Shown here one piece after another: positions 20,266 to 55,142 of a DNA stretch of 64,000 nt. Origin of the DNA: Selaginella moellendorffii (lineage: Eukaryota > Plantae > Lycopodiophyta); contig NW_003314307.1 of assembly GCF_000143415.4 (NCBI RefSeq), forward strand, positions 832,378 to 896,377, written 5' to 3'. Both the position numbers and the translations under genes were made by a program. Numbering within the stretch: position 1 is the first letter of the stretch; each line of letters begins with the position of its first letter. Under the pieces are notes generated by a model. It was not told the origin of the DNA. It did no database searches and saw only the letters and a list, made by a program, of their open reading frames with translations.

Positions 20266-23200
20266 TGTGAGGTCCAAGTGTACGGCTACGATGCCATATA
20301 TTAATATTAGCATAGTGGGATTTTGGTAGCTGTCAGATTGGTTTCAATCCAGACCACTTGCTCTTGTATATAAACTAGGGTTTTTGGGTTAATTAATATG
20401 CACATTTTCTGTATTCCCTTTTTATATTTAATGCACTCACATTGGTGGAGATGAGGGGCATCTTTGATTGTCCTTGAGGAGTGTTTAAATTTGGGATTTT
20501 TGGTTTAGATATAACTTTTGCATCATCTAGGTTTAATTTTTTCCATTTCCTTTTTTTTATTTTTTCCTTTCAAGATCTAACTTTTTGCATTGTCTAAATC
20601 TCCCTTTCCTTCTAGCCTTTTTTCATCTCTTCTTTTGTTTTTTCCTTTTCGTTCATTTTCATAGTAGATTAGTAATCTCATTCTCTTTTGACTCTAGAGC
20701 AGCAATTGGTACAATTGCTTGATGCTATATGATTGCAATTGAACAACCAAACTCAATTGATGGTGGCATTCATGGCATGTAGTACAACTCTTCCTATTTT
20801 TAGTGCCAATTCTTGTGTTCAGCCGAAGTTCTTTTGCGGGAATCTTGGGGATAATGTGTACCATTGATTCGATCACTTCACGGTGATTGCCATATATTAT
20901 TCTTGGGATGATGCTTGACGTTTGCATGAATTTCCCACATGTCTCCAAGGGACAGCGTTGCAGTGGTACAATTGTTTGAACGCAGCCACTTGTGAAGATT
21001 GGAATATTCTCCCGGACGTCTTTAAACATGCATTCGAACATGCCAACGATTGTGATGATGCTTTCCAACAATTGCATTATTTTTGTCAAGGGCCATCTAA
21101 GTTGGTGATGCAATTTAGCATTCATTTCCGAAGCCTCTTGCTTCATGCAGAGCCAAATATGTTGAAGCGGATCAAGCTAGGAATGTTGTGGCCAGTACTT
21201 CGTCAAGATTTTGTCAAACTTATACATGCACTTGCTCCTGCCACCCTTGACAATGCTCTTCGCTTGGCACAACATTATGAGATGTCGCTTCTTCCACTTC
21301 TCGCTTCACATCCTTCAGCTCCACTTCCTGTGGGTGATGGTCTTGTTCCAATGGAGGTTGATGCTACTACTGCTCAAGTCCAAGGACAAGAGCGAGGCTG
21401 TGGTTGTGGCTGTGATATTCGTTATTGGGTGCTTGATGAAGTTGGTCACACTTATCGGCATTGTCGGTGTTTTCCAAATTAGTAGCCACTATTTCTTGAG
21501 TGGATACCTTGGCATCAATAACATCTTTTTGGTGTTGCTGTAGTAGAAGGTTTGAACACTAAGATGCATTCGGGAAATAAGGAGTGGCGTGAGTAACGGA
21601 GGGACCTTGTGCGAATAAGTTAGTGACCCCTCAATATTTCTTTCGAAAGTATCATCAAGGGGTTCACTTGGCACCAGTTCATCCAGTGTTTACTTTCCAA
21701 GCTTATTTTTATAACAAATGGTCTCCTATTATTTTCTCTGTGTTGGTTGATATAGGTTCGAGTTTATCTTCTATTGCTTGACCTGTTGCCACAAGTTGCC
21801 ATTTACACTTGCGTCGTGCAGTGGAGCCAGTTTTCATTATTTATGGCAACGGCCGTACATATGCATGTGCACAGGATGAGGCAGACCTAGTTGTGCATGT
21901 GAACGATCCCGAGCTTGGGTTGCAATCATTGTAGGTGGTGCTAAGTCAAGCTTTTGACTTCATCCTTGGTATAGATTGATTGCAACACAATCATGCCAAG
22001 TGTGACTTTGAGGCTTCTCCCCCTTGTCTCATATTTCTTTATATTTCATCCATTCTTCTCACTTCTGTATTCTTCGTCCCTCTAATTCTACCTCTGCTTC
22101 TATTTCTTTTGTCCCCCCACTACTTCCTCTTATGTTTCCATCTTGTTTTGCTTTTCTCTTTTCCGATTTAGCATTTGTGGATTTTCTAAACGAGGATTCT
22201 GTGCCGTCGGGGGTTTCTGTACTTGACATTTAGTGTCCACAAGGTGCGGAGCAAAATCTACCTTCTCTTAATGAGGTTCACGAGGCTCAAAAGATTGAGC
22301 CATGGATTTGAAAGCTTCGAGATGGGTTTGAGAATCCTAGATCACTTGCTAATGACTTGCTTTTCCTTCATTTACATTCTCAATATCGCCTTGAAGACGG
22401 CCTTTTTTATTTTGTGAAGATAGATCCTGATGATCCTTTATAGCTGGGGATGCCTTCTGTCTTTATTCTACGGTTTCTCCATGCCTACCATGATTCTCCT
22501 ATTCTAGACGAACATATGGGATATCGTTGTGTGATTGAAAAGTTGCATAAATCTTTCTATTGGCCGAAGATGCAATGTGATGTTATTCAATATGTGTGTA
22601 GTTACATTTGGTGCTAAGCCCGTAATACTCCTCTTTATTCCTCGGAAAGACAATTGGAGTCAATTGCAATTTCCCGTCCGTTTAAGTTGGTGGCGTTTGA
22701 TCTTATAAGACCTTTTCCACGATCAATTATTAGCAATGAGTATGTTATTATTGCTTCTGACTATTTGACTCATTGGGTGGAAGTTGGTGCTCTTGCTAGT
22801 GCCTCTGCAACTGTTATTAAATACTTCTTCCTCAATCGAGTGGTGTTCTAGCATTCTTGTCCATAGCGGATTCTTTCGGACAATGGTCCCGCATTTATGG
22901 CTGAGGCATTTCATATTTTGATGTCTCAGTTGGGGATACACCACACCTTCACAAATGTTTATCATAAATACAAATGGTTTGGTGAAACGGCTCGTTCGGA
23001 CGTTTAAAGGGATGATTGCAAAGTATGTGAACTTTTAGCATTCGAATTGAGATGGTTATTTGCCTTCTCTTTGGTATGCATATGTCACAAAGGTGCAGAG
23101 TTCTATTGTTGCTTCACCATATAAACTTCTATGTGGTCATGATCTAATATTGTTAACAGAGTTGGGTTTACCTTCACAATTGTCACGAGCTGCCGATGCT

Positions 23201-23765: not shown

Positions 23766-26390
23766 ATCTGAAATTTTAGAGGTTTTTATTTCTGACCTAA
23801 TTTAAATAATAAATTAACTATATTTAGTATTACTAAATATAAAATTATTACTATAAAATCCTAATTTATATATTAATCTTTATTTATAAATATATCAAAT
23901 TCAAATACAATACTAATAACTAGTTCTTTTCCAATGTCTTTGATACCTCTAACCATGCATTTGTAATGTTAAGGAACATTAATTTCTTGAGAAAAGTGAG
24001 ATTGTTATTATTGTTGTAAAGTGTTCATTTCAAATTTAAAGCCTGTTTCAATGAAAGCATAAAACTTCAAATTCATCAATTTCACCCAAACAACCAAATA
24101 AATTGCTTATTTTTTGGTTTTTGGATAATTAACATTGCACAGACCATGTGTGCAAAACTTTTGCAGGACATAACCATATGAATTGATCACATTGTTCTGG
24201 AGGATTGCCATATTGTTTTCATCTACAAAAACAATTAGCTAGAGTGCGTAAAGTTCATATAATAATTTGCTTACCACATAATATTCCTCCAATCCAAACA
24301 AAATATTTGATTGTAGAACTTGCTCTAGGTTGACATATAGCTCACTAAATCTTATGAATAATTTTTTTTTTGACTTAGAAGTAGCTAAGCTTTTAATTGC
24401 TCAAAAGTATTGGTCCTCTATATTCTATAGTTACATACTCATGTTTGGGATGGTACAACTTTCTCGATTGCTTGGGCTTACTTATTAATTGTTTTCTTCT
24501 GAGAGTTTTAAGGTTCTTAATTGGTTTTATTGTAAATTAAATTCCAATAGCATTTACTTTGTGAGGTTGTGACCAAGAGGTTGTGTCAATGTTATAGTAA
24601 ATAAACAGTCCACTAAATCTTTAAAATGATATGTATTTTATTATAACTTAGCCTTTTATATAAGAGTGCATAAAGGTCTATCGTAAGATAGAGGTGACCA
24701 AATCATTCTAGAAAGTTTTATATTAAAATATGCATTTAGAGAAACTTTTTTTCAATAGTGGGTAGCAAGTATTTTAAAACTCATTTAATAAGAAAGAGAA
24801 TTAATAAAGGAATCAATGCTGGTAGTTCTTTATCTGAGAAATAATTAAAGTCTTTAAATGTAGAAAACAACTAAACCACCATGTTAGCTAAGTTTGTAAT
24901 TCTAAACTTGTATTCTCTATAAACATTACTTTCAACCCACTAAAATGTATAAATTTATATTACTTGTTTAAATTTTCTAAAGTGTTTGTACTTTTTAAAC
25001 TCTAACACAATTAGTTATGCTTATCATGGTATTCACCTCGAATGCATTTTTTTATATGTTCATGTAACTCTACTCTTGATAGAGAAGGCAACTCCTCTTT
25101 CAGATAATTAAAATTTTATTTTTGGAACCATTATACATAATTCTAATGCTTCCTCAATTTTTTTATGCTTCATTACTCATGAAATTATAAAGCATTTGTG
25201 GTGTTGAAAATTTTATTCCAACATGATATACATTGTTCAAAAAAGAACTTAAAATAGCATTTCTCTTAGATAACTATTACCATCAAGGATTATGCTCTAT
25301 ATAAAAGGATTTTCTGTTAAAGAGAACTTAAATAAAGGAGTTCAGAAAAATATTTTTATACACTAAAGAATATTTTATTAAGGTTTTAGCTGTAATATTT
25401 TTATTAAACAGATATTTTTAAAATAGTAATTTAAGTATCTAAACTTTATTGGAAATAGTTTCTATTTGATAGAGGCTTTGCATTATCACCTAATTTAGAA
25501 AAAACTTATTATTTTAATATCTAATAATTAGTACTTATATTAATTATTAAAGTTATATATCTATATTATATCAATATCTATTTGTTTCACCTCATATTCA
25601 GATGTTATAATGAATCCAAAGTCTAACACTTAGATCCATCCTATGCAAAGGATAAAATACTCTAGAATTTTAACATTTAAAGAATTATGTGTAATTGCAA
25701 CTTTGTTGTAAAGCTTTCTATTTACAGTGTCACTTCCATAAATGAGAATCATATACTCGTGATGATGATATTGCTGCTTAACGTTGATCTTTTACTTTTA
25801 ATTATAATGCCTTTGAGTATGTTGTCTTTGCTTCATTTGACCAAGTATTTGTAATCTCATATATTTGTTGTTTCTCGTCTACTAATATCAAATCAAGAAA
25901 GATTTAAAGAACTTGAATTGTAATTATAAATTTTGTATATATGTACAGGGCATGGTTGAAAGAAGAATATAGCATCTAATCTACAATAAAATCTTGGAGA
26001 AAATTAAGTTCCTTATACACTAATGAAAAAAGTTAAATATACTTATGTAAATACGTTTGTGAATAGGCTTATACAGATTTAAAGTGACCAAACACTATAA
26101 ATCTATAATTGGTTTGCTTAAGCAAACCTGTAGCAGTATTGACTATATTTAAATATGCTTGGAGATTCTAGGATATTTTAATAGCTAATAGTTGTTGTTC
26201 ATTTAGATTAATATTTTTATTTATAATTTATAATCTTTCCTAAACACTTTATAGTATATTCTTGCTTATTCTACTATCGATATGGAATAATATTAATCTT
26301 GACTTATAAATTATAAATATGTTTATAACCATTGATCAATTAAAATACTCAATGAATGCAGAGATAAGTATTGTCTCTCATATTTTTTAT
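23766..26390. repeat. AT-rich repeat, subfamily B; contains the empty Helitron target site (GACTA|TATTTAAATAT near 26145)
   Basis: Collinear with 4350-6790 followed directly by 13006-13230. Confidence 0.85.
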
Positions 26391-26393
26391 CCT

Positions 26394-27000
26394 TCACCAT
26401 GGTGTGCCAGCTAAGATCCTTTTGCGTCTTTTCAGGAGCCATCTTTGTTTGGGTTTTATGGACAGCTCCATCAACCTTGCATCACACTCTTTCCTTGCAA
26501 AGTTTATCAACCTCCCGAGATGAGCTTTTCTCTCATTGAGCAAGCATGCTGAGTAGTGGATTCCATCCAGATTTCTCTCCCAGATTTGTGAGTGGAGCCT
26601 CTTCTCTGCTAAGTCGCTGTGTGCCTCGAGCGCCACCATGAAAGTCTGAGCGTTTGGCTGCTGGCTTGCTCATAGCACTCAAGAGCAAAGGTTGTTCTCA
26701 GCATATCCCAGGAAACAATGTTTTCCTACTCCATGCAAAGTCTCAGCGTTTGGAGACAGGCCAGCTTCTTGTTCCATCTGATAGAAGATGTGCTGTCCCA
26801 TGATGATCGTGTTCCAGGCAGCCAACGTCATGTTTATTTGTCCTCCTGAACACTTCTGATGCTTCCACATGTCCACGAGGCTGCTTGCGACGAATGCATC
26901 GGCTTTGTATTCACAATTTGCGAGGTAGACCAGCCTATCCTATTCTTCGTCCCATCCTGTTGAACTACCTGTGTTGCAAGCCGCAGTGTAGACTTCGACC
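26394..27000 (-). pseudogene. Decayed PPR fragment, module P
   Basis: Same motifs as the other module P copies. Confidence 0.6.
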
Positions 27001-27216: not shown

Positions 27217-28189
27217 TCAGTCAAATCGAAACTTGGTAGGTTCTTGCTCTATTTTCCAGTCCATGTTCCGAGCCAGCTGTGCAATAACTTCCAAGTCTGG
27301 TAGTTGACCCTCGTATGTGATCTTCACTGTCCGTGAGCAAGAGCCTGCTGTCTTCTTGCTCTGCAACTTCATCTCCTTGANNNNNNNNNNNNNNNNNNNN
27401 NNNNNNNNNNNNNNNNNNNNNNNNNNNNNNNNNNNNNNNNNNNNNNNNNNNNNNNNNNNNNNNNNNNNNNNNNNNNNNNNNNNNNNNNNNNNNNNNNNNN
27501 NNNNNNNNNNNNNNNNNNNNNNNNNNNNNNNNNNNNNNNNNNNNNNNNNNNNNNNNNNNNNNNNNNNNNNNNNNNNNNNNNNNNNNNNNNNNNNNNNNNN
27601 NNNNNNNNNNNNNNNNNNNNNNNNNNNNNNNNNNNNNNNNNNNNNNNNNNNNNNNNNNNNNNNNNNNNNNNNNNNNNNNNNNNNNNNNNNNNNNNNNNNN
27701 NNNNNNNNNNNNNNNNNNNNNNNNNNNNNNNNNNNNNNNNNNNACTGCTGCGTCGTGACCATCGCGACGATGGTGGTGGTGGTGGTGGTGGTTGTGGCGT
27801 CCTCCATGGTGGTGACCATGGTGGTGACCATGGTGGTGAACAACCAGAGGAGCTCCATCACCGTGATGATGATGGTACACTGCTGCTGCTGGAGCTGGAT
27901 GGTGCTGGCGAGCATGATCGAGGATAGCAGGTGCTGGAGCTAGATGAGCAGGGTGCCCGTGAGCAGGGTGAACGAAATCAGCTGGCACTGGGGCTCGATC
28001 TGGAGCGTCACCTTGAAGAACTAGAGCTAAAGCTGGCGCTGGCTCGTGGCCTTGGTGTCCATGGTGGTGTGCTGGATGTGCTGGAGCTAGAGCTGGAGCT
28101 CGCGGGTGTGAAGCTCGGTGATGGCTGCCATGCCAGGGCGCTTGAGCTCGGTGGGCAAGCATTGGGGCAGCGTGAGCGCTAGAGACCAT
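27217..28189 (-). CDS. His-rich membrane protein copy 3 plus the 3' half of the HMA-like ORF; middle lies in an assembly gap
   Basis: 27744-28189 is an open His-rich frame from ATG; 27217-27380 encodes KEMKLQ...KFRFD*. Confidence 0.55.
27381..27743. other. Assembly gap
   Basis: Run of N. Confidence 1.
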
Positions 28190-34895: not shown

Positions 34896-36669
34896 AATAG
34901 TTCCCAAGTTGCACTTGTATATGCTTCTTGCAATGTTATACTTTTGGTAGGTCTTTAATCCCTTACAAACATATGTATTTTATATATTTAATGCTTTTTG
35001 GGATGAATTCAAATGTTAAAATGTTAATATGAGGAGTTCATAATATTAAGAAACAATTAGATATTAGTATTGTATTTGAATTTAAAAAAATTATTATAAA
35101 ATATTAATTATAAGTTACACATAACATAACAAAGGGCATTTCTTAAAGTTACACTCAAATGGATTTTACAGTAATAATTAAATATTTAATAATAATAAAT
35201 ATTAAAACTTAAAATAATACTTTCTTCTGTAAATTAGGTTACAAGGCAAAACCTCTATTAATTAGGAAATATTGCCACTCATATTTAAATATTATTTAAA
35301 TTACTAGTTTGTTTAAAATACCTCCTTAATAAAAATATTGCCATAAGAAAATATTCTTTAGTGTACCAGAATATTTTAAAATTTTATTCTTAATGACTCT
35401 TTTTGTTGACCTGGATCTCTCTATTAGCAAATTGTACATCACCTAGTAAACTTTTAATAATTAGTTTCTTTGAATTGATCAAGTGTGCCCAATATCTCTT
35501 TTTTTTTGTTCAGGGGCTATGAGACACCAAAAGCAAATGTGCTTAAACTTTAAAAGAATGTGAAGGTAACATTTCCAATTTTGAAATTTTGTAAGAAAGA
35601 AAATTTACTCATTTTAAAATACTTTTAGCTATACAATTATGTAGCTAAATATGTTTACTAGCAAACCAAAATACCAAATAATATTTGTGTTACTAATAAT
35701 TAAAATAATAATACATAATATTTACCAGGAGGAGGAGGAACAAGGCTAGTGTTTTTCAAGTAAAGAAATTGGCAAAACCAACACAATATAAATCAAATTG
35801 GTATGATTTAGAACAACTTTGCAAGGAGTTCCTCTTGTACACATCAAGCAGCCCATCCTATGGATTCCACACACATCTCTTTTGAGCATATGCTCCACAA
35901 ATCCCTCGGCCTTAAACCTGGATATCAATCCCAAATATCCAAAGCTTTTCTTTTCACCATTCTAGTACTCATCGATGAGGTTTGGAAGGACCAGCAAGCT
36001 TTTGTAGCCAAGCAGCTGCATGGAAATGGTACGTACATACTCAAGGTCATGAAATCTCATTTTGGCGACATCCTATGAGGTGCGATACCAGCATCTCCAA
36101 ATATGTTCGATTGTTGGATCGTTCTAGGCGTTTTGACCAATTTTACTCTGGACAACCTGTGGATTAATATCAATATGGAGCTATGTTGCACCGTGAGAAT
36201 ATTAAAACAGCAATGGATAGATATTTATCTTGTGTTCCTTTTTCCCATTTTTTTGCAAAAGGAAGTAGTTTGTGCACACTGATGGCTTGTGTCTCCATGA
36301 GTTCCATGACTCGCATTCAATGAGTGTCAAGTTTCCAAAGGTTTGACAAGTGAGTAACAAAATTTCATTCACTACATTAACATTAAGCCTAAAAAGGAGT
36401 TGCTATCAAATTAAAATTGTTTTTTCTGTACCTAAAGCATTTCGTGATTGTGAGATTAAATTGCTGTTCACATCTAGGTTTGGGCTCTTTGGCATGCTCA
36501 AGCCCGATGGCACCCTTTCTGACAATCCACAGCGTCACCAGCTCTCGAGTCCACTCGTTTTTTTTTTCACAAAGCCAAAAGTACCGCTTTATTTTTTCTA
36601 AGTCAAGGGTTAGGTTATAATCTTTCTCACTTGGATTTTTCTATTGTCAAAGCTCTCGTCAGGTAAGCT

Positions 36670-37410
36670 ATGGTCTCTCGCGCTCACGCCGCCCCAATGC
36701 TTGCCCGCCGAGCTCAAGCGCCCTGGCATGGCGGCCATCACCGAGCTTCACACCTGCGAGCTCCAGCACATCCAGCACACCACTATGGACACCAAGGCCA
36801 CNNNNNNNNNNNNNNNNNNNNNNNNNNNNNNNNNNNNNNNNNNNNNNNNNNNNNNNNNNNNNNNNNNNNNNNNNNNNNNNNNNNNNNNNNNNNNNNNNNN
36901 NNNNNNNNNNNNNNNNNNNNNNNNNNNNNNNNNNNNNNNNNNNNNNNNNNNNNNNNNNNNNNNNNNNNNNNNNNNNNNNNNNNNNNNNATGGAGCTCCTC
37001 TGGTTGTTCACCACCATCACCATGGTCACCACCATGGAGGACGCCACAACCACCACCACCACCACCACCATCGTCGCGATGGTCACGACGCAGCAGTGGC
37101 CACACCAACACCCACAGCAGTAGTTACAGTGGTTCGGAGGACGCCGTGGTCGCTGCTCCAGCTTCTTCTCTGGGTTTTGGTTGCGATCTTGGTGCTGCTC
37201 GCGTGCTTTTTGCTCGTGCGATGGATGTTATCTCGAAGGAAGCAGCGCAGTAATGTGATCTTTCAGGATCCCGGGTGGCAGATCGAAGTTGTGGTGGACG
37301 ATCCTCCGACCGAGAAGAAACAGCTGGAAGCTCACACTCGTGGTTCGCACAGCAATGGCACTCTAGGATTCTCCTCAAAGTGTCCTGCAAACACTGGCAG
37401 TGACGCGTAA
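36670..37410 (+). CDS. His/Ala/Pro-rich membrane protein, copy 4 (N gap at 36802-36988)
   Basis: ATG start and intact TM and C-terminus on either side of the gap. Confidence 0.6.
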   Translation: MVSRAHAAPMLARRAQAPWHGGHHRASHLRAPAHPAHHYGHQGHXXXXXXXXXXXXXXXXXXXXXXXXXXXXXXXXXXXXXXXXXXXXXXXXXXXXXXXXXXXXXXXGAPLVVHHHHHGHHHGGRHNHHHHHHHRRDGHDAAVATPTPTAVVTVVRRTPWSLLQLLLWVLVAILVLLACFLLVRWMLSRRKQRSNVIFQDPGWQIEVVVDDPPTEKKQLEAHTRGSHSNGTLGFSSKCPANTGSDA

Positions 37411-37624
37411 CTCAGCACAGTGCATGCGTTGTCACATGGAAGATTGTGTACAAACAATCTTCAAGGAGATGAAGTTGCAGAGCAAGAAGACAGCAGGCTC
37501 TTGCTCACGGACAGTGAAGATCACATACAAGGGTCAACTACCAGACTTGGAAGTTATTGCACAGCTGGCTCGGAACATGGACTGGAAAATAGAGCAAGAA
37601 CCTACCAAGTTTCGATTTGACTGA
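37400..37624 (+). CDS. Small HMA-like ORF (best-preserved copy)
   Basis: 74 codons overlapping the His-ORF stop in the +1 frame; CMRC and CHMEDC; C-terminal pattern like HMA/CopZ. Confidence 0.4.
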   Translation: MTRNSAQCMRCHMEDCVQTIFKEMKLQSKKTAGSCSRTVKITYKGQLPDLEVIAQLARNMDWKIEQEPTKFRFD

Positions 37625-39943
37625 GCTATCCTCTAGAGTGACGGGGGAGCAGACGTTAGTGCACCTCCAAAGGCCGGAGAAGTTGCTTGAGACGAAAGGT
37701 TTGAGAAAAGGTAACGTACTACTTTTGCTCTCTGTTCTTGCAGGCGCTCAAAGCTCAACTTTGATGAGAAGACGCAGTGCAGGGCATAGCAGCCAGATAA
37801 GTTTCTCCAGAGTCAAGCCGGGAATCAAGCAAGTGCATTTGTGAAAGTATGGTCGAAGTCTACACTGCGGCTTGCAACACAGGTTGTTCAACAGGATGGG
37901 ACGAAGAAGATGAGAGACAATACTTATCTCTTCAGTAGTATGAGTATTTTAATTGATCAATGGTTATAAACATATTTATAATTTATAAGTCAAGATTAAT
38001 ATTATTCCATATCAATAGTAGAAAAAACAAGAATATACTAGAAAGTGTTTAGGAAAGAATATAATAAAAAGATTAATCTAAATGAACAACAACTATTAGC
38101 TATTAAAATATCCTAGAATCTCCAAGCATATTTAAATATAGTCAATACTGCTACAGGTTTGCTTAAGAAAACCAATTATAGATTTATAGTGTTTAAATCT
38201 GTACAAGCCTATTCACAAATGTATTTACATTAGTATATAGAACTTTTTTCATTAGTGTATATGGGACTTAATTTTCTCCAAGATTTTATTGTAGATTAGA
38301 TTTTATATTCTTGTTTAATAAAAATATTACAACTAAAACCTCAATAAAATATTCTTTAGTGTATAAAAATATTTTTGTGAACTCCTTTATTTAAGTTCTC
38401 TTTATTAGAAAATCCTTTTATATAGAGCATAATCCTTGATGGTAATAGTTATTTAAGAGAAATGCTATTTTAAGTTCTTTTTTGAACAACGTATATCATG
38501 TTGGAATAAAATTTTCAACACCACAAATGCTTTACAGTTTCATGAGTAATGAAGCATGAAAAAATTGTGGAGGCATTAGAATTATATGTAATGGTTCAAA
38601 AAATAAAATTTTAATTATCTGAAAGTGGAGTGGCCTTCTCTATCAAGAGTAGAGTTACATGAACATATAAGCATATGCATTTGAGGTGAATACCATGATA
38701 AGCACAATTGATTGTGCTAGAGTTTAAAAAGTACAAACACTTTAGAAAATTAAACAAGTAATACAAGTTTATACATTTTAGTGGGTTGAAGGTAATGTTT
38801 ATAGAGAATACAAGTTTAGAATTATAGACTCAGCTAACATGGTGGTTTAGCTGTTTTCTACATTTAAAGGCTTTAATTATTTCTCAGATAAAGAACTACC
38901 AGCATTGATTTCTTTATTAATTCTCTTTTTTTATTAAATGAGTTTTAAAATACTTGCTACCCACTATTGAAAACAATTTGCTCTAAATGCATATTTTAAT
39001 ATAAAACTTTCTTGGTCACCTCTATCTTACAATAGACCTTTATGCACTCTTATATAAAAGGCTAAATTATAATAAAATACATATACTTTTAAAGATTTGT
39101 TGGAATGTTTATTTACTATAACATTGACACAACCTCTTAGTCACAACCTCACAAAGTGATGGGATCAACTTTAAATGCTATTGGAATTTAATTTACAATG
39201 AAACCAATTAAGAACCTTAAAACTCTCAAACGAAAACAATAAGCCCAAGCAATTGAGAAATTTGTACCATCCCAAACATGAGTATGTAACTATAGAACAT
39301 AGAGGACCAATACTTTTGAGCAATTAAAAGCTTAGCTACTTTTAAGTCAAAGAATAAAATATTCATAAGATTTAGTGAGCTATATGTCAACCTAGAGCAA
39401 GTTCTACAGTCAAATATTTTGTTTGGATTGGAGGAATATTATGTGGTAAGCAAATTATTATATGAACTTTACGCATTCTAGCTGATTGTTTTTGTAGATG
39501 AAAACAATATGGCAATCCTCCAGAACAATGTGATCAATTCATATGGCTATGCCCTACGAAAGTTCTGCACACATGGTCAATTATTCAAAAACCAAAAGAT
39601 ATACCATATATTTGGTTATTTGGGTGAAATTGATGAATTTGGAGCTTTATGCTTTTGTTGAAACAAGCTTTAAATTTGAAATGAACACTTTACAACTATA
39701 ATAACAATCTCACTTTTCTCAAGAAATTAATGTTCCTTAACATTAAAAATGTATGGTCAGAGGAATCAAAGACATTGGAAAAGAACTAGTTATTAGTATT
39801 GTAATTTAATTTGATATATTTATTAAAAAAAATTAATATAAAATTTAGGATTTTATAGTAATAATTATATATTTAGTAATACTAAATATAGTGAATTTAT
39901 TATTTAAATTAGGTCAGAAATAAAAACCTCTAAAATTTTAGAT

Positions 39944-42900
39944 TGTGAGTGTATGGAATATAGAAAGAGAATACAAAAAATATGCATTAGCCCAAAAAAC
40001 CTGTTTATATATAGGAACAAGTGGTCTGGATTGAAACTAATCCGATGGCTACTAAAATCCCACTACACTAATATTAATATACAGCATCATAGCCGTACAC
40101 TTGGACTTAGACCTCACATCATCCCTCCTCTCGGAATAATGGAAGACCATTAGGGTTCTTTTGTAGATGGGCTGGGATCTAAAGGAATGTCAAGAGGAGG
40201 CATTGGCAGATCTGTAGGTGGTATTAATTGTTTCTGATCTTTTTATATGAAGCGTTTTAACCGTTGCATATACACAATTTTTGGAAGATTTGCCTATTGG
40301 ATGTCATGCCAAACCTCATAAACTTGTGGTCCAACTTGCCGCAACACTCAATATGGTCTTTTCCACTGAGCAAGGACCCCTTTAGATAAACCACATATTG
40401 TAAGATGGGGAAAATGGACTAACACTATGTCATTCACTTTGTACTCCGCATGCGGATGATGATAGGACTTATAGCATTATTGTTATCCCACTTGTATACG
40501 GCCTAAGTGTTTGGCAGACTTTACTCGAACAAGTGGAAGAATGCTCGTCAAATACTAATCCCACAACCTAGCATTAGTAGCTCGTGACAATTGCAAAGGT
40601 AAACCCAACTCTGTTGGTAACATTAGATCATGACCACATAAAAGTTTATATGATGAAGTAACAATAGAACTCTACACCCCTGTGACATATGCATACCAAA
40701 GAAAAGGTAAATAACCATCCCAATTCGAATGTTGAAAGTTCACGTACTTTGCAATCATCCCTTTAAACATCCAAACGAGCCGTTCCACCAAACCGTCTAA
40801 TTATGGATAATAAGCATTCGTGAAAGTGTGGCGTATCCCAAACTAAGATGTTAAAACATGAAATGCCTCAGATATAAATACGGGACCATTATCCGAAAGA
40901 ATCTGCTCTGGACAAGAATGCTAAAACACCACTCAATTGAGGAGGAAATATTCAATAGCAGTTGCAAAGGCGCTAGCAAGAGCACCAACTTCCACCTAAT
41001 GAGTCAAGTAGTCAAAAGCAATAATAACATACTCATTATCAATAATTGATTGTAGAAAAGATCTTATAAAATCAAACGCCACCAACTTAAACAAACGAGA
41101 AACTGCAATTGACTCCAATTGTCTTTCCAAGGCACGAGGGAGAGTATTATGGGCTTGGCACCAAATGTAGCTACACACATACCAGATAATGTTATGTTGC
41201 ATCTTCGGCTAATAGAAAGACTTGTGCAACTTTTCAATCACACAACGATATCCCATATGCTTGTCTAAAACAGGAGAATCATGGTAGGCATGGGGAAACT
41301 ATAAAATAAAGACAGAAGGCACCACCAGCCGTAAAGGATTATTAGGATTTGTCCCCACAAAATAAAGAAGGCCATCTTCAAGGCAACATTGAGAATGTAA
41401 ATGCCAGAATGGCAAGTTATCAACAAGTGATGCAAGATTCTCAAACCCATGTTAAAGCATTTGAATCCACAGCTCAATCTTTTGAGCCTTACGAACCTCA
41501 TCAAGAGAAGGTAAATCTTGTTCTACACCTTGTGGATATTGAATGTCAAGTACAGCAACTGCTGACGGCACAAAATCCTCGTCTATAAAATTCACAAATG
41601 TTGGAATAACAGGCTTGTTAGAAACATGAGAAGAAAGAGAAGAAGGAAGAAGAGCTCAAGAAAGGGCATCAGCATTAGCCATAGAATTCCCTAAGTGATG
41701 AACAACATCAAAATCAAATATCTGAAGCTTCAAAGCCCACCAAGCAGTATGATCAACCAGGTTCTTCCGCTTCAATAATGAAGTAACGGCAGCATGATCA
41801 CCTTCAAGTAACATCCGAGAACTACATAAATATGCATGAAGTTTCTTGAAACCCTACACTGCTGCTAAACACTCTTTCTCTATCATGGAGTAGTTCATCT
41901 TTGTTAGTTGTAATGTACGGCTTATATATACAATGGGATGGCACTGACCAAGCACACTTAAGTTCTTTTGTATCAACACACTTCTAAGACCAATATCAAA
42001 AACATCCATGCGCAAAATAAAAGGTCAAGTGTAGTCAGGATATGCCAAAACTAGAGGAGTTGTCAATATCTCTTTGAAATCCACATACGCTTGCTCACAA
42101 TCCGAAGACTAGATGAAAGATGACATTGATGACTTCAACAACACTCGCAATGGTGTAGTGCGATAAAAAAAATGATCCACAAAATGACCGAGATACTACA
42201 CCTTGCCCAGGAAGCGCTGCATCATTCACACACTTTGGAGTAGGGAACTTTAGGATAGCCACAAGTTTTTCATGATCAACTTGCAAACCCTCACGAGAAA
42301 TATGGTACCCAAGATAAGTCGTGTCTTTGGACCCAAACACACATTTCGACTGCTTCAGCTTTAAACCAACATCCCATAGTTGATCCAACACTTTACAAAC
42401 ATCATAAATGTGCTCCTCCCACGTCCCCTCCGAGTGGATCAAGACATCATCAATGAAGTCAGTAATTATCTCCAACATATCGCAAAGAACCTGATCATCC
42501 ATCATCCACTAAAAAGTTGCAAGAGCATTGTTCAAACCAAACGGCATCACCAAGAACTCGTACAAATCAAATAGTGTACAAAAAGTAGTTTTAGGAATAT
42601 TTTCTTCGGCCATTAGTACTTGCTAATAACTAAAAGTATGATCTAGCTTGGTGAACCAATAACTTCGCCCCAGACAATCCAAAAGATCAGCCATGGGGGG
42701 GACAAAAGAAATGGAAACAAAGGTAGAAGTAGAGGGACAAAGAGTACAGAAGTGAGAGGAATTGATAAAATATAAAGAAATATGAGATAAGGGGAAAAAG
42801 CCTCAAAGTCACACTTGGCATGATTGCGTTGCAATCAATCTATACCAAGGATGAAGTCAAAAGCTTGATTTGGCACCACCTGCAATGATTGCAACCCATG

Positions 42901-44537: not shown

Positions 44538-45431
44538 AGATCTAGATATTATTTAAATTACTATTTTGTTTAAAATACATGTTTGACACTAAAACATTAA
44601 TAAAATATTCTTTAGTGTACCAAAATATTTTTAAAATATTCTTAATGACTCCTTTTGTTGACTTGGCTCTGTTTATTACCAGATCCACTTGAAAGTACAT
44701 TAAGTTGTACATTCTTGAGGTCAATAGGAAGGCATTGATTTCCTTGTTACAACTTACAAGTTCTAAAGGCATTAGTTTGGTTTTTAAACAAGATCCAGGT
44801 AGGCAACATGCTTAGAATACAAGAAATGGAGAGAGGCCACCTTGAAACAAAATCCATCACCTAGTAAGCTTTTAATAATTAGTTTTTTTGAATTGATCAA
44901 GTATGCCCAATATCTCTATTTGTTTGTTCAGAGGCTATGAGAGACCAAAAGCAAATGCATTTAAACTTTGAAAGAATGTAAAGGTAACGTTTCCAATTTT
45001 GAAATTTTGTAAGAAAAAAAAGTTACTCATTTTAAAAGACTTTTAGCTATACAATTATGTAGCTAAATATGTTTACTAGCAAACTAAAATACCAAATAAT
45101 ATTAGTGTTTATACAATTTGATTGCTACTGAAGATCATATAATTGATTTACATTCTGTTGGTTTTACCAATTTCTTTACTCATCCTCTTGAATAACACTC
45201 TCTTTTCGTCCTCCCTTGTGAATACTATTACTATTATATAAGCATTAGTAACATTCTTCATGGTTGCCTGCAGATGCAGATGCTTGCCTATAGAAACTTG
45301 CTGGAGATGGTGGTCTTTCCAAAGCTCATCACTCAAAAGGCTCTTGAAATGCAACAAAAGATGCCAGAATCTCCAAGGATGAGTAATAGAATGGTGAAGA
45401 GAAAAGATTAGCATTTTTGTTTCTTTGCTAA

Positions 45432-45504
45432 GGGGATGTAGCTCAGATGGTAGAGCGCTCGCTTAGCATGTGAGAGGCACCGGGATCGATACCCAGCATC
45501 TCCA
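45432..45504 (+). tRNA. tRNA-Ala(AGC), best-preserved copy
   Basis: Cloverleaf with G3:U70, intact D arm, TTAGCAT anticodon loop and ATCGATA T loop; one C-A mismatch in the T stem; first T4 run about 32 nt downstream. Confidence 0.8.
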
Positions 45505-46094
45505 AATATGTTCAATTATTTGATCATTCCAGGCATTTTGAGCGATTTTACTGGTGTTGACCTTTGGGGGAGCTATGGATGGATGTTGCACCGTGAGACC
45601 ATCAAAACAGCAATGGATAGACATTTATTTTGTTTTTCTTTTTCCCACTTTTTTGCAAAAGGAAGTAGTTTGTGCACGCTGATGGCTTGTGTCTCCATGA
45701 GCTCCATGACTTGCATTCAATGAGTGCCAAGTTTTCAGAGGTTTGAAAAACACGTAAAAAAGTTTCATTCACTACTTTAGAATTAAATTGCCATCAAATT
45801 AAAATTGTTTTCACTTTTGGAAATATTTGTACCTAGAGCATTTCGTGATTGTGAGATTAAATCGCTATTCACATCTAGGTTTGGGCTCTTTGGCATGCTC
45901 AAGCCCGATGGCACCCTTGCTGACAATCCACAGCGTCACCAGCTCTCGAGTCCACTCGTTTTTTTTTTCACAAAGCCAAAAGTACCTCTTTATTTTTTCT
46001 AAGTCAAGGGTTAGGTTATAATCTTTCTCGCTTGGATTTTTCTATTGTAGAAGCTCTCGTCAGGTAAGCTGGCTCTCGCGCTCACACCGCCCCA

Positions 46095-46790
46095 ATGCTT
46101 GTCCGCCGAGCTCAAGCGCCCTGGCATGGCGGCCATCACCGAGCTTCACACCCGCGAGCTCCAGCTCTAGCTCCAGCACATCCAGCACACCACCATGGAC
46201 ACCAAGGCCACGAGCCAGCGCCAGCTTTAGCTCCAGTTCTTCAAGGTGATGCTCCAGATCGAGCCCCAGTGCCAGCTGCTTTCGTTCACCCTGCTCACGG
46301 CTACCCTGCTCATCTAGCTCCAGCGCCTGCTATCCTCGATCATGCTCGCCACCACCATCCAGCTCCAGCAGCAGCAGTGTACCATCATCATCACGGTGAT
46401 GGAGCTCCTCTGGTTGTTCACCACCATCACCATGGTCACCACCATGGTCACCACCATGGAGGACGCCACAACCACCACCACCACCACCACCACCATCGTC
46501 ACGACGGTCACAATGCAGCAGTGGCCACACCAACACCCGCAGCAGTAGTTACAGTGGTTCGGAGGACACCGTGGTCGCTGCTCCAGTTTCTTCTCTGGGT
46601 TTTGGTTGCGATCTTGGTGCTGCTCGCGTGCTTTTTGCTTGTGCGATGGATGTTATCTCGAAGGAAGCAGCGCAGTAATGTGATCTTTCAGGATCCCGGG
46701 TGGCAGATCGAAGTTGTGGTGGACGATCCTCCGACTGAGAAGAAACAGCTGGAAGCTCACACTCGTGGTTCGCACAGCATGGCACTCTAG
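46095..46790 (+). CDS. His/Ala/Pro-rich membrane protein, copy 5
   Basis: 231-aa ORF; first ATG lost; a 1-nt deletion near the 3' end shifts it into the HMA-like frame, ending at TAG. Confidence 0.55.
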   Translation: MLVRRAQAPWHGGHHRASHPRAPALAPAHPAHHHGHQGHEPAPALAPVLQGDAPDRAPVPAAFVHPAHGYPAHLAPAPAILDHARHHHPAPAAAVYHHHHGDGAPLVVHHHHHGHHHGHHHGGRHNHHHHHHHHRHDGHNAAVATPTPAAVVTVVRRTPWSLLQFLLWVLVAILVLLACFLLVRWMLSRRKQRSNVIFQDPGWQIEVVVDDPPTEKKQLEAHTRGSHSMAL

Positions 46791-47269
46791 GATTCTCCTC
46801 AAAGTGTCCTGCCAACACTGGCAGTGACGCGTAACTCAGCACAGTGCATGCGTTGTCACATGGAAGATTGTGTACAAACAATCTTCAAGGAGATGAAGTT
46901 GCAGAGCAAGAAGACAGCAGGCTCTTGCTCACGGACAGTGAAGATCACATAACCAGACTTGGAAGTTATTGCACAGCTGGCTCAGAACATGGACTGGAAA
47001 ATAGAGCAAGAACCTACCAAGTTTCGATTTGACTGAGCTATCCTCTAGAGTGACGGGGGAGCAGACGTCAGTGCACCTCCAAAGGCCAGAGAAGTTGCTT
47101 GAGACGAAAGGTTTGAGAAAAGGTAACGTAGTACTTTTGCTCTCTGTTCTTGCAGGCGCTCAAAGCTCAACTTCGATGAGAAGACGCAGTGCAGGGCATA
47201 GCAGCCAGATAAGTTTCTCCAGAGTTAAGCCGGGAATCAAGCAAGTGCACTTGTGAAAGTATGGTCGAA

Positions 47270-47850
47270 GTCTACACTGCGGCTTGCAACACAGGTTGTT
47301 CAACAGGATGGGACGAAGAACAGGATAGGTTGGTTTTCCTCGCAAATTGTGAATACAAAGCCGATGCATTCGTCACAAGCAGCCTCGTGGACATGTGGAA
47401 GCATCAGAAGTGTTCAGGAGGACAAATAACATGACGTTGGCTGCCTGGAACACGATCATCATGGGACAGCACGTCTTCTATCAGATGCAACGAGAAGCTG
47501 GCCTGCCTCCAAACGCTGAGACTTTGCATGGAGTAGCAAAACATCGTTTCCTGGGATACAACCTTTGCTCTTGAGTGCTATGAGCAAGCCAGCAGCCAAA
47601 CGCTCAGACTTTCATGGTGGCGCTCAAGGCACACAGCGACTTAGCAGAGAAGAGGCTCCACTCACAGATCTGGGAGCGAAATCTGGATGGAATCCACTAC
47701 TCAGCATGCTTGCTCAATGAGAGAAAAGCTTTTCTCGGGAGGTTGGTAAACTTTGCAAGGAATGCAAGGTTGATGGAGCCGTCCATGAAACCCAAACAAA
47801 GATGGTACCTGAAAAGACGCAAAAGGGTCTTAGCTGGCACACCATGGTGA
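47270..47850 (+). pseudogene. Decayed PPR fragment, module P
   Basis: Inverted copy of 26394-27000. Confidence 0.6.
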
Positions 47851-48178
47851 AGGATAAAAAATATGAGAGACAATACTTAATATCATTCATTGAGTATTTT
47901 AATTGATCAATGGTTATAAACATATTTATAATTTATGAGTCAAGATTAATATTATTCCATATCAATAGTAGAATAAACAAGAATACACTAGAAAGTGTTT
48001 AGGAAAGATTATAAATTATAAATAAAAATATTAATCTATGCGTCATTGACACACTATGTGCGAGCGAGTTTGTTTTCAGCATGCCTTTCAAGCCAGACTC
48101 GGTGGACCTGAGCTCGATTCATCAACTGTTGTAAGAGATCGAGTGGATCGATCTAAGAGTTTATCGAAGAGCTTTTAG

Positions 48179-49979: not shown

Positions 49980-50510
49980 CTACAACAGAGTGACTAGATG
50001 GTGTGTGCAACCTAAAAGCATCAAAGGAGGGGAAGCTGAAGTACATTGCCAGTGATCCTCCAGCTTCCGCTCAAAGAGCCTGAAAGCTGAGGCTACATCT
50101 CCCTGGTGGTAGTAGCTGAAGATGATTGCATTCCAAGTTACAGCGTTGCGTCCCGCGCTGGCCATGGCCGCTGAGTTGAAAACTTCGCAAGATTCCACCA
50201 CGCAGCCACACCGTCCGTAGAAGCCCAGCAGAGAGTTCACAACGACCACCTCGGCTTCCATCTCGGCATGACAGATCTGCTGGTGGATGGCACTTCAAGT
50301 CTCCAGAGCCTTGGAGCTCCCACAGGCCTGGAGCACAGCAGTGTAAGTTGGAGTGTCGGGTACTAGGCCTTGGACTTGCTGCATCTGCGAGAAGAGATCC
50401 AGTGTAGTTGGTGATTGCTCCGCCTGGATGTATCCGAGCATCAGTGTTGTCCACGAGACAACATCGTGCCTCTCCATCCGGTCGAAAACTCTCCATGCAT
50501 CCACCTCTTT
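49980..50510 (-). pseudogene. PPR fragment, frameshifted copy of 12420-12970
   Basis: High similarity and same downstream flank (TATTCAAATATAGATTCTAGG); the Helitron hairpin is lost. Confidence 0.9.
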
Positions 50511-50572
50511 TTAAAATTCGTATTCAAATATAGATTCTAGGATATTTTAATAGCTAATAGTTGTTGTTCATT

Positions 50573-51720
50573 GCTATGGAGTTTCTTACTGGACACCACG
50601 AAGAAATGCGAGCTTAGGCAGCTAAAGCATCGACGAGCAGCATCAACGTGGCCGGATCGACTGCAAGCCAGCAAGATCGAGACAAAAGAGCTCTCATCTG
50701 GCCGTAAACCATCACAACTCATCGAGCTCAAGATCTGGAACGCTCTTTACGAGCAAAGGCTAGCGCTCTGGGATTGAGCGCAACAGGCCAGGAGAGAGTT
50801 CACACTGAGACGTCAGCCAAAACTAAGAATTCGCTCGTCTTTCTCGAAAGGTGGCGATGGCATTCTTTGCGAGAAAACGTAGAAGCCATGACACTCCACG
50901 CAACGAAGTTTCTCTCCGGCATGGAGTGAAAGATCGAGGCAGCGTTTCAAACGAATCCATTGCGCGCGTATCTGTTGAGCATAGCGGTCCAGGAAACCAA
51001 GCTCGCCTCCTCCATCGCCGGGAAGATCTCCTCGGCCTTGGACAGATGCCCGTTTTGGGCATACGCTGCGAGCATCGCTGTGCAGGCGATGAGATTCCAC
51101 TCGGCCATGGCACGAAAGAAGAAATCCTCGGCGCTCGCCAGATCTGAATCTTGGATGTAAGCCGAGAGCATCTAATTCCAGGAAGAATCGATCTTGGCGG
51201 GCATGGAATCAAATAGCTTTCTCGCTTCGACGGCATGCCCGCGCTGGGCATACACGGTGATCATCGCGTTCCAACACACCTCGTCCCGGACGGGGGTAGA
51301 ATCAAAGAGAAACCGCGCCGATTCCAAATCCCCGAGGCCCGAGCGAGCGTGTGGATCATGGTAGTGATCGTGATGGCGTCGTGCTCCGGCATGGCGGCGA
51401 AGAGGATACGTACGCGGCACAGATGCCCTCTCTTGGCATACGCGTCCAGCATCGCATTGCAAGAGACGAGGTCGCGGTTGGGCATCTGGGCGAAGAAGAG
51501 CTCTGCCACTTTGATCGCCTCTTCTCCCTCCATTTCCCCTGCCACCAAGAATGCCGAGAGCATTGTGTAAGGAGACGAGGCTCCTCTCGGGCATGGAATC
51601 GAAATGGGATTTGGTAGCAGCCAAATGCCTAGCTGTGGCATATGCGGCAAGCATTCCATTCCACGCAATCAAATCCCACTCTGGCATTGATTGAAAGACT
51701 ATCTGGGCTTGATTGATTAA
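50573..51720 (-). pseudogene. PLS-class PPR pseudogene rich in short (S-type) motifs
   Basis: MPEWDLIAWNGMLAAYA, MPNRDLVSCNAMLDAYAKRG, RDEVCWNAMITVYAQRG, PDESSFVSILLACSRSG; several frameshifts. Confidence 0.9.
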
Positions 51721-52429
51721 TTTTTTTTCGGGCGAGATTGCACACATGAAGTCATATCCATTTTTCCCGTGCATAAATTTTATAAATTGTACATGTGGGA
51801 CAACAATGCATTATAAATCTCTTCGGTATATAAAAATGTCAGAGAGCAAGACGAAAATTTAAATAAAAAACAATTACCATTAGTCTAGCAAACAATTTTC
51901 GCTAAGTTACAGGCAGGGTAAATTCATCTTATTGAGACCTAAAGTAAGCTTTGGCTTGCAAAAGACTCAAGCACTTAGTCTGCAATTATATAAAAGACCA
52001 ATCACCATAGATCTCATATTGTCTCGGCATATATAACGTAATTGTCTTTAATATTTGACCATGATGTGCCACCTAAGATCCTTTTGCTTGTTTTCACGAA
52101 CCATCTTTGTTTGGGTTTGGTTGACAGCTCTGTCAACCTTGTATTACACTATTTCTTCATTTTTCTCGAAAATTTTACTGGAGAAAACCTTTTCTCTCAT
52201 TTTTTATTAAGTTCTTCATATCCATAAAATTGGCCTTCAGTGATAGTTTTGACGCAGCACTCCTAGTTCTCAGGCAACTCCCAAACACCTAAATTGGAAG
52301 TATGATAAATACCTTCCAAGGTGAGATGTGCAAAAGACCTAATACCTTCTCCACATTAAAATTGCATCTTGTGAAAACAAAAAAGCTATGAACTAGTGAA
52401 AAAAACTTAGAGTACTTGTGAACATCAGT

Positions 52430-53010: not shown

Positions 53011-53429
53011 CATACTTTCACAATTGCACTTCCTTGATTACCGGCTTGACTCTGGAGAAACTTATCTGGCTGCTATGCCCTGCACTGCTTCTTCTCATCA
53101 AAATTGAGATTTGAGCGCCTGCAAGAACAGAGAGCAAAAGTAGTACGTTACCTTTTCCCAAACCTTTCGTCTCAAGCAACTTCTCTGGCCTTTGGATGTG
53201 CACTAACGTCCGCCTCTAGAGCATAGCTCAGTCAAATCGAAACTTGGTAGGTTCTTGCTCTATTTTCCAGTCCATGTTCCAAGCCAGCTGTGCAATAACT
53301 TCCAAGTCTGGTTATGTGATCTTCACTGTCCGTGAGCAAGAGCCTGCTGTCTTCTTGCTCTGCAACTTCATCTCCTTGAAGATTGTTTGTACACAATCTT
53401 CCATGTGACAACGCATGCACTGTGCTGAG

Positions 53430-54200
53430 TTATGCGTCACTGCCAGTGTTGGCAGGACACTTTGAGGAGAATCCTAGAGTGCCATTGTTGTGCGAACCAC
53501 GAGTGTGAGCTTCCAGCTGTTTCTTCTCAGTCGGAGGATCGTCCACCACAACTTCGATCTGCCACCCGGGATCCTGAAAGATCACATTACTGCGCTGCTT
53601 CCTTCGAGATAACATCCATCGCATGAGCAAAAAGCACGCAAGCAGCACCAAGATCGCAACCAAAACCCAGAGAAGAAACTGGAGCAGCGACCACGGCGTC
53701 CTCCGAACCACTGTAACTACTGCTGCGGGTGTTGGTGTGGCCACTGCTGCGTCGTGACCGTCGCGACGATGGTGGTGGTGGTGGTGGTGGTGGTGGTGGT
53801 TGTGGCGTCCTCCATGGTGGTGACCATGGTGATGTTGGTGAACAACCAGAGGAGCTCCATCACCGTGATGATGATGGTACACTGCTGCTGCTGGAGCTGG
53901 ATGGTGGTGGCGAGCATGATCGAGGATAGCAGGTGCTGGAGCTAGATGAGCAGGGTGGCCGTGAGCAGGGTGAACGAAATCAGCTGGCGCTGGAGCTCGA
54001 TCTGGAGCGTCACCTTGAAGAACTGGAGCGTCACCTTGAAGAACTGGAGCTAAAGCTGGCACTGGCTCGTGGCTTTGGTGTCCATGGTGGTGTGCTGGAT
54101 GTGCTGGAGCTTGCAGGTGTGAAGCTCGGTGATGGCCGCCATGCCAGGGCACTTGAGCTGGGCGGGCAAGCATTGGGGCGGCGTGAGCGCGAGAGACCAT
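53430..54200 (-). CDS. His/Ala/Pro-rich single-pass membrane protein, copy 6 (complete ATG to stop, 256 aa)
   Basis: Ungapped ORF with an in-frame 21-bp duplication (APVLQGD x2), H9 tract and TM; the downstream HMA-like ORF has a 12-bp deletion that creates TAA. Confidence 0.7.
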   Translation of the reverse strand: MVSRAHAAPMLARPAQVPWHGGHHRASHLQAPAHPAHHHGHQSHEPVPALAPVLQGDAPVLQGDAPDRAPAPADFVHPAHGHPAHLAPAPAILDHARHHHPAPAAAVYHHHHGDGAPLVVHQHHHGHHHGGRHNHHHHHHHHHHRRDGHDAAVATPTPAAVVTVVRRTPWSLLQFLLWVLVAILVLLACFLLMRWMLSRRKQRSNVIFQDPGWQIEVVVDDPPTEKKQLEAHTRGSHNNGTLGFSSKCPANTGSDA

Positions 54201-54550: not shown

Positions 54551-55090
54551 TGGCACTCATTGAATGCAGAGTTTATGGAGACACAAGCCATTAGCATGCA
54601 CAAACTACTTCCTTTTGCAAAAAATTGGGAAAAAGAAACACAAGATAAATGTCTATCCATTGTTGTTTTGATGGTGGCACTCATTGAATGCAGAGCTTAT
54701 GGAGACACAAGCCATTAGCATGCACAAACTACTTCCTTTTGCAAAAAATTGGGAAAAAGAAACACAAGATAAATGTCTATCCATTGTTGTTTTGATGGTC
54801 TCACAATGCAACATCCATCCATAGCTCCCCCAAAGGTCTAATGGCTTGCACAAACTACTTCCTTTTGCAAAAAATTGGGAAAAAGAAACACAAGATAAAT
54901 GTCTATCCATTGTTGTTTTGATGGTGGCACTCATTGAATGCAGAGCTTATGGAGACACAAGCCATTAGCATGCACAAACTACTTCCTTTTGCAAAAAATT
55001 GGGAAAAAGAAACACAAGATAAATGTCTATCCATTGTTGTTTTGATGGTCTCACAATGCAACATCCATCCATAGCTCCCCCAAAGGTCAA
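54551..55090. repeat. Nested tandem repeats (~125-bp unit, ~250-bp higher-order period)
   Basis: GCACAAACTACTTCC...TTTTGATGG occurs four times. Confidence 0.9.
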
Positions 55091-55142
55091 CACCATTAAA
55101 ATCGCTCAAAACACCTGGAACGATCCAATAATCGAACATATT

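Follow-up and report, generated by a model that had tools for sequence, protein, structure and literature searches.

Across the 64-kb stretch of Selaginella moellendorffii DNA analysed here (the window; contig NW_003314307.1, positions 832,378 to 896,377 of the forward strand), one repeated unit encodes a His/Pro/Ala-rich protein with one transmembrane helix, and the stop codon of its open reading frame (ORF; hereafter the His ORF) is overlapped by a second ORF in the +1 frame. A preliminary description of the sequence had read this +1 ORF as an HMA/CopZ-like domain possibly coupled to the His-rich gene, in a product that could act as a metal sensor or an immune decoy. Our analysis indicates that the +1 ORF is not a working HMA domain, a metal sensor or an immune decoy. 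It is probably untranslated 3′ trailing sequence, being either a decayed former coding piece or an ORF that is open by chance, two origins that we regard as about equally plausible. In the mechanism that we propose, the +1 ORF would be part of a long unspliced 3′ region in the mRNAs of a spikemoss-specific, locally amplified His-rich family; ribosomes on the His ORF would halt at TAA 37408–37410, and the +1 ORF would have no usable start for the whole domain, would not be joined to the His ORF and would not be kept by selection. If it is a remnant, it may derive from a C-terminal exon that was lost or from a gene fragment that was captured, and is now decaying. We arrive at a remnant or a chance ORF because the translation looks like protein, showing a CxxC motif and a ferredoxin-like pattern of a generic kind, and comes without a start, a joining or selection.

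Positions are counted from the first letter of the window. The locus under study, copy E of the repeated unit, contains the following features:

36670–37410, plus strand: His ORF of copy E, encoding a single-pass membrane protein rich in His, Pro and Ala; stop TAA 37408–37410
37147–37230, plus strand: predicted transmembrane helix (WSLLQ...VRWML), a hydrophobic run in the translation, then SRRKQR
37255–37366, plus strand: candidate in-phase GT...AG intron of 112 nt, from splice-site arithmetic; not seen spliced
37367–37624, plus strand: +1 ORF, 85 codons plus TGA 37622–37624, bounded 5′ by TAG 37364–37366
37367–37410, plus strand: 44 nt in which the +1 ORF overlaps the last part of the His ORF, encoding the predicted first strand LQTLAVT (37385–37405)
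37421–37432, plus strand: CxxC motif (Cys19-Met-Arg-Cys22) in the +1 ORF
36584–37932, plus strand: transcribed stretch, sense, unspliced, at a depth of 1–6, continuous except at an N gap and a skipped repeat of His codons

The translation of the +1 ORF contains ...QCMRCHMEDCVQTIFKEMK...TVKITYKGQLPDLEVIAQLARNMDWKIE..., includes the peptides TVKITYK and GQLPDLEVIAQLAR, and ends in ...TKFRFD before the TGA. No in-frame ATG lies ahead of 37424 in the copy E ORF; the first one, at 37424–37426 (codon 20), falls inside the CxxC motif in a context with T at −3 and C at +4, and a product started there would therefore lack the first strand and Cys19. For the ATG-started ORF, no exact-sequence record was found. 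Its GC content at the three codon positions (0.51/0.39/0.51) follows the same pattern as in the PPR ORF of the window. As an open frame, the +1 ORF is unremarkable here and its length is expected by chance: the window holds 95 open stretches of at least 85 codons, second-order Markov copies of the 944-nt segment in which it lies (51% GC) hold four such stretches on average, and the segment itself contains further open stretches of 83, 87 and 95 codons.

Transcription of the locus was assessed in raw reads of two stranded RNA-seq runs, about 12% of each run being read, which yielded 55 reads (29 and 26). In all of them the first mate maps to the minus strand; they thus represent plus-strand RNA, the sense of the His gene. 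Over 37081–37932 the stranded reads revealed no splice joints, joints being listed from three reads up. Read starts and ends do not pile up, and no 5′ ends gather before the +1 ORF; loose ends occur at 37908 only, where reads go on into sequence that is kept by copies D, F and G and lost from copy E. As 53 of the 55 reads are only 95–99% alike to copy E, they stem mainly from sister-copy RNA; the family is expressed, though copy E itself may hardly be. Contigs from another two runs, which can only be guessed to be RNA, span 37173–37286, 37257–37404 and 37375–37484 ungapped. RNA passes unspliced through the His stop and the +1 ORF and into a degenerate PPR fragment, and the sister-copy transcripts that run into this PPR-like fragment are chimeric read-throughs. 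The 3′ trailing region containing the +1 ORF measures at least 500 nt. Whether transcripts end before the +1 ORF, a question raised in the preliminary description, is answered by reads that cover the ORF and pass beyond it; its proposal that splicing or a fused transcript couples the two ORFs found no joint among these unspliced reads. A second intron-like stretch at 37710–37743 (GTAACG...TTGCAG) was considered and rejected, reads and contigs crossing it unspliced.

The pattern of substitutions was analysed by pooling the differences among the window copies with the variants seen in the RNA reads, which gives small numbers from copies that exchange segments. Over 37081–37407, 12 of 24 differences are synonymous in the His frame, against an expected fraction of 0.28 (p=0.016), and the two other frames give 6/24 and 5/24. 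In the +1 ORF frame (37367–37621), 2 of 13 differences are synonymous and 11 non-synonymous, with a synonymous fraction of 0.24 expected; outside the overlap the count is 1/9. The changes include Q8P in predicted strand 1, R21P inside the CxxC motif (37428 G>C, in an expressed sister copy) and R68W/Q in predicted helix 2. Variation in the +1 ORF frame fits neutrality, and an omega of 0.3 or less is rejected (p=0.009 and 0.016). No purifying selection is seen in the +1 ORF frame, whereas the His frame is constrained, a contrast that is clear despite the small numbers.

Four further copies of the unit carry the +1 ORF in whole or in part, and two of them share a deletion:

17741–18028, minus strand: copy C, open, 95 codons, with another end after the recombination point at 17781
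27217–27380, minus strand: copy D, open where visible, 3′ part only, with an N gap upstream
46791–46952, plus strand: copy F, cut to 53 codons by a TAA
53312–53473, minus strand: copy G, ended after 53 codons by the TAA that it has in common with copy F
37528–37539, plus strand: position in copy E of the 12-nt deletion in copies F and G, with junctions at 46943–46962 and 53302–53321

The sequence thus confirms the layout that had been described, namely a +1-frame ORF overlapping the His stop, its open and cut copies and a 12-bp deletion common to two of them. In copies F and G this deletion leaves ...ACA TAA CCA..., with a stop after TVKIT, and two of the five copies therefore end prematurely after codon 53. 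Openness in the other three is explained by recent duplication (the copies are 94–97% identical over the part of interest, and the flanking non-ORF sequence is equally similar) and not by conservation. Equally accurate was the observation that a 1-nt deletion in copy F (one A, at 37353/4 in copy E and about 46779 in copy F) moves the His ORF into the +1 frame, where it ends at TAG 46788–46790. The ancestral fused state that had been read into copy F does not survive: the 1-nt deletion is confined to this copy, being absent from copies C, E and G and from the RNA reads, and is therefore by parsimony a derived, late change, and copy F in addition carries the 12-bp deletion with its TAA. On these two grounds, copy F was rejected as an ancestral fusion. 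An uninterrupted frame running from the His-rich region through the transmembrane helix into the +1 ORF occurs in none of the window copies. A CAG in place of the separating TAG, which was thought earlier to be a possible deaminated CAG, finds no support: each of the four window copies that extend over the position of 37364–37366 has TAG, and the one variant observed there is TGG, in reads of one sister copy outside the window. The TGG copy also has R21P and other non-synonymous changes.

By the sequence and profile comparisons that we made, membership of the +1 ORF in the HMA family (PF00403 / IPR006121) fails. Pfam hmmscan to E=10 with copies E and C returned no HMA, the rows being sub-threshold chance matches only, and a phmmer search of the complete set of PDB sequences to E=10 returned APC and a multihaem cytochrome, the latter matching by a CxxCH motif, with no HMA chain. 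A word-index search with the +1 ORF found nothing within its length window; a BLASTP comparison with E. coli CopA residues 1–150, which comprise its two HMA domains, gave nothing at E up to 100; and the language-model neighbours were unnamed acidobacterial clusters below 0.9, with no HMA among them. An exhaustive HMMER (phmmer) search of 1.84 billion representatives produced three hits only (best E=1.7e-08). These at first seemed to be multi-domain metal pumps; by Pfam they are Fn3/BspA-LRR repeat proteins, in which a weak 20–40-residue match is added up over five repeats, and they were discarded as spurious. No recognisable parent gene of the +1 ORF was present among the 1.84 billion representatives. 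The HMA pattern that had been picked out by eye is accordingly backed by no sequence statistic, be it from Pfam, PDB sequences, the 1.84 billion representatives or CopA.

A single-sequence AlphaFold model of the +1 ORF, of low confidence (mean pLDDT 59.6, pTM 0.45), places strands at residues 7–14, 49–55 and 73–77, helices at 24–34 and 61–70 and a bridge at 39, which is the ferredoxin-like order; the second strand is hardly predicted, and its stretch (KLQSKKTAGSCSR) is polar. Cys19-x-x-Cys22 is placed in this low-confidence model between the predicted strand 7–14 and helix 24–34, the loop position of the HMA CxxC. Foldseek against the PDB returned nothing at E of 0.001 or less, and in its weak rows (E 0.02–0.2, TM-score 0.45–0.64) ACT domains and designed ferredoxin folds stand beside numerous HMA domains, the HMA rows at E 0.05–0.2 and TM-score 0.45–0.55 (Pikp-1 HMA, E 0.12). 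An exhaustive VIA-align structural search ranked an ACT domain (prephenate dehydratase) first, with Z 7.8 and a root-mean-square deviation of 2.8 over 76 residues, where models that have no clear match typically reach a best Z of 7–8 and the arrangement is a common one; S6, CheA-P2 and RRM followed, and the first HMA, Pikm-1, came at rank 29 (Z 5.6). In the Atlas shape search, an ACT cluster reached a TM-score of 0.66 and an all-HMA cluster, in row 2, a TM-score of 0.61. The fold resemblance of the +1 ORF therefore seems generic at best and not specific to HMA. Of the fold proposed earlier, a ferredoxin-like AlphaFold model with a CxxC was obtained at low confidence, so that neither of the outcomes named beforehand as refuting the idea came about; an HMA profile match was not obtained, and ACT, S6 and RRM fit as well or better. 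Two soft features of an HMA domain, fold and CxxC, are thus present in a low-confidence model, and the hard one, kinship by sequence or profile, is absent.

Several observations weigh against the +1 ORF being mere untranslated trailing sequence. When this DNA is translated in the His frame instead (37411–37617), the single-sequence model has pLDDT 38.9, pTM 0.16 and no secondary structure. Atlas 'recognition' was 2666 for the +1 ORF as against 1126 and 1357 for two off-frame controls (the His-frame reading of the same DNA and a neighbouring 83-codon frame-0 ORF), on a scale on which 2300 is reached by 91 of 100 known-family proteins and by 9 of 100 shuffled or reversed ones. The CxxC lies at an HMA-like place, and many HMA domains occur among the weak fold matches. 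Relative to matched controls, which are few, and by signals that are not mutually independent, the translation of the +1 ORF thus appears distinctly protein-like, which keeps the idea of a former coding sequence alive. Moreover, the +1 ORF starts exactly after a possible acceptor, CTCTAG followed by G (37366/37367), with an in-phase GT 112 nt upstream. Finally, most of the reads derive from sister copies outside the window, and with joints listed from three reads up at a depth of 1–6, a minor spliced form could escape.

These last points bear on a spliced fusion, in which a small share of the transcripts, or transcripts made by other copies or in other tissues or conditions, would lose 37255–37366 and join ...SRRKQRSN to DSPQSVLQTLAVT...; the product would comprise the His-rich region, the transmembrane helix, SRRKQRSN and, next to the membrane, an 85-residue ferredoxin-like CxxC domain that could bind metal or be a redox-sensitive module. 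We consider such a fusion unlikely. The GT at 37255 and the AG at 37366 are canonical, in phase and 112 nt apart, and the +1 ORF begins at the acceptor; however, with about four in-phase GTs in 120 nt, chance alone is expected to provide a donor at this place, and expressed sister copies have lost both sites, 37256 T>C abolishing the GT and 37365 A>G the AG. The RNA depth is low enough to miss a minor isoform, yet no joint is seen, the depth in the candidate intron (1.2–3.5) equals that over the +1 ORF (0.8–5), and reads and contigs cross both candidate sites unspliced. Constitutive splicing of 37255–37366 is excluded. Although the domain, unlike the controls, is protein-like and has a predicted fold, its variation is neutral and two copies bear the premature TAA, and in the tail that would be the intron, 5 of 11 differences are synonymous in the His frame, like the rest of the His ORF.

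A bolder form of this idea, to which we would give only a slim chance, is that the +1 ORF is, or was until recently, a real lineage-specific, membrane-proximal ferredoxin-like CxxC module without sequence relatives, attached to the His-rich membrane protein through a facultative intron (GT37255–AG37366). Retention or splicing would then switch a Selaginella protein that possibly handles metals between a tail-less and a CxxC form.

It is improbable that the +1 ORF represents a highly diverged true member of the HMA family (a PF00403 homologue), working or relic, such as a HIPP/HPP-type remnant that the His-rich gene captured or became fused with. The family is defined by a ferredoxin-like fold plus CxxC (PMC12835825), and HMA domains supply many of the weak Foldseek rows and the second row of the Atlas search, but ACT, S6, CheA-P2 and RRM all rank above the first HMA in the exhaustive comparison, there is no sequence signal at any level and no parent gene among the representatives searched, and the model that carries the resemblance is of low confidence, with a second strand that is barely predicted over a polar stretch. 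Independent translation, as a small CxxC protein made by reinitiation or from an internal transcript or as a +1 frameshift extension within the 44-nt overlap, is very improbable: the frames do overlap in the +1 register, the ORF is protein-like, and in the sister copy with TGG an ATG at 37355 could open an 89-codon ORF with the whole predicted domain, but many AUGs lie upstream of the +1 ORF in the mRNA, the first ATG of copy E is inside the CxxC in a poor context, transcript 5′ ends do not pile up before the ORF, variation is neutral with two copies truncated, and no shift site or stimulator of a known kind came to light, no systematic search for one having been made.

Were the earlier reading true, it would describe a new plant metal-binding design in an early vascular plant, in which a membrane helix connects a His-rich domain to an HMA-like one, and would bear on the diversification of HMA and HIPP proteins. 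Nothing points to a role as a metal sensor or as a decoy of the NLR type: no NB-ARC or LRR is attached, Pfam finding neither in the His ORF or the +1 ORF, and the other long ORFs scanned are PPR, Helitron and Ty3 remains. The placement of the His-rich part as 'extracellular' is likewise an assumption; by eye the N-terminus of the His protein has no obvious signal peptide. The case cautions that a Cys pair and a helix-strand pattern recognised by eye, and even a ferredoxin-like AlphaFold model, are insufficient for calling an HMA domain, while transcript structure and substitution pattern argue against a working exon. The one point worth keeping, the protein-like character of the translation, makes the +1 ORF a small candidate case either of a coding fragment that was lost or captured or of a 3′ untranslated region in which protein-like sequence arose.

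The window as a whole is eukaryotic in composition, with AT-rich spacers (25–30% GC) in alternation with GC-rich islands (~50% GC), and its entire 64 kb is a mosaic of segmental repeats. The unit encoding the His-rich protein occurs in eight places:

about 2.6–3.3 kb, minus strand: copy A, internally deleted
13.2–13.9 kb, minus strand: copy B, 3′ part only
17.8–18.9 kb, minus strand: copy C
26.3–28.5 kb, minus strand: copy D, with an N gap
36.4–38.0 kb, plus strand: copy E, the locus under study, with an N gap at 36802–36988 inside the His ORF
45.8–47.9 kb, plus strand: copy F
52.9–54.5 kb, minus strand: copy G
from 63.85 kb, plus strand: copy H, start only

Sister His ORFs are located as follows:

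53430–54200, minus strand: His ORF of copy G
46095–46790, plus strand: His ORF of copy F
17985–18770, minus strand: His ORF of copy C
27221–28189, minus strand: His ORF of copy D

The His/Pro/Ala-rich family looks like a real lineage-specific gene family, because word-index searches found no homologue, transcription is in the sense direction, and synonymous differences are in excess (12/24, p=0.016). The His protein belongs to no Pfam family; its matches, DUF350 and FeoB_associated, are weak, below the cut-off and of the transmembrane type only. Word-index searches with the whole protein and with its non-repetitive C-terminal residues 150–256 found nothing, the former being flooded by low-complexity candidates and both blanks being limited by the length window, so that absence of the family elsewhere is not shown by them. 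For the 256-aa His protein of copy G, no exact-sequence record was found.

Individual copies have been reshaped in several ways. The N-terminal part of copy C (18603–18803(-)) is in a different frame from that of copies D and G (G: 54069–54200(-)), reading MSKLSSGKLWSLALTPP... where they read MVSRAHAAPML..., which implies that an indel moved its start and that some copies are probably pseudogenes. In copy A (2647–2888(-)), an internal deletion corresponding to 37264–37860 of copy E takes out the cytosolic tail, the +1 ORF and most of the trailing region, and the transmembrane part is fused to downstream sequence in an ORF at 2485–2967. Copy C is a recombinant that switches at 17781 (37614 in copy E), right at the end of the ORF, to a segment bearing a tRNA gene; its 17348–17781 matches 45156–45611 and 55038–55494, the segment upstream of copies F and G. 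A 10-bp deletion (37639–37648 in copy E) is common to copies D and G, and the 12-bp deletion (37528–37539) to copies F and G, conflicting groupings that indicate gene conversion or recombination between copies.

Other elements accompany the unit. Genes for tRNA-Ala(AGC) have been co-amplified with it at 17455–17527(-), 45432–45504(+), 55143–55215(-) and 3589–3661(-); three of the four are intact by ARAGORN, and the fourth is seen by Rfam only, with a lower score (37 bits). Downstream of the unit and in the same orientation lies the degenerate PPR-like fragment (47328–47857(+), 26387–26935(-), 13209–13748(-) and 2045–2590(-)), which has no Pfam match and of which copy E lost ~530 nt after 37916. 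PPR gene pieces of PLS type at 12324–12998(-) and 49980–51774(-) have clear Pfam PPR matches, are split over several frames and are pseudogene-like. Transposon remains in the window comprise a Helitron_like_N ORF, a Ty3-type gag and a reverse transcriptase fragment (9417–9842(+), 20922–21482(+) and 42095–42505(-)).

Set beside known systems, the +1 ORF departs from the HMA family (PF00403 / IPR006121), whose members include ATX1, CopZ, MerP, the N-terminal domains of P1B ATPases and the plant HPP/HIPP proteins, in several respects. It has no Gly-Met-x ahead of the first Cys (it reads SAQCMRC), no profile or pairwise similarity and a poorly formed second strand; it is unselected, has no start of its own and lies behind a stop codon in another frame. 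Even its CxxC comes with a caveat, an expressed sister copy having Pro between the cysteines. The best structural matches of the model are ACT, ribosomal protein S6, RRM and CheA P2, but the +1 ORF shares no sequence similarity with ACT and other ferredoxin-like domains, and ACT domains have no CxxC in the first loop.

Among plant proteins, HIPPs combine HMA, Gly/Pro/His-rich stretches and a membrane anchor. HIPPs, however, place the HMA first and anchor by a C-terminal CaaX prenyl group, whereas here the order would be His-rich region, transmembrane helix and domain, with no CaaX and no Cys four residues from the end. Integrated HMA decoys occur inside the NB-ARC/LRR receptors of flowering plants. 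To such NLR decoys (rice Pik-1, RGA5) the likeness is a weak fold resemblance only (Pikm-1, Z 5.6; Pikp-1, E 0.12), and whereas their HMA sits inside an NB-ARC/LRR receptor, the His-rich gene has neither NB-ARC nor LRR by Pfam.

Long open frames in 3′ untranslated regions and chimeric transcripts are features of amplified, transposon-rich plant regions in which fragments are carried by Helitrons or Pack-MULEs. The present locus differs from these in that no parent gene of the +1 ORF was found. It resembles them in that the unit is surrounded by a patchwork of segmental repeats that includes remnants of Helitron and Ty3 elements, the transcript enters a degenerate PPR fragment, and the +1 ORF is unselected and variably truncated.

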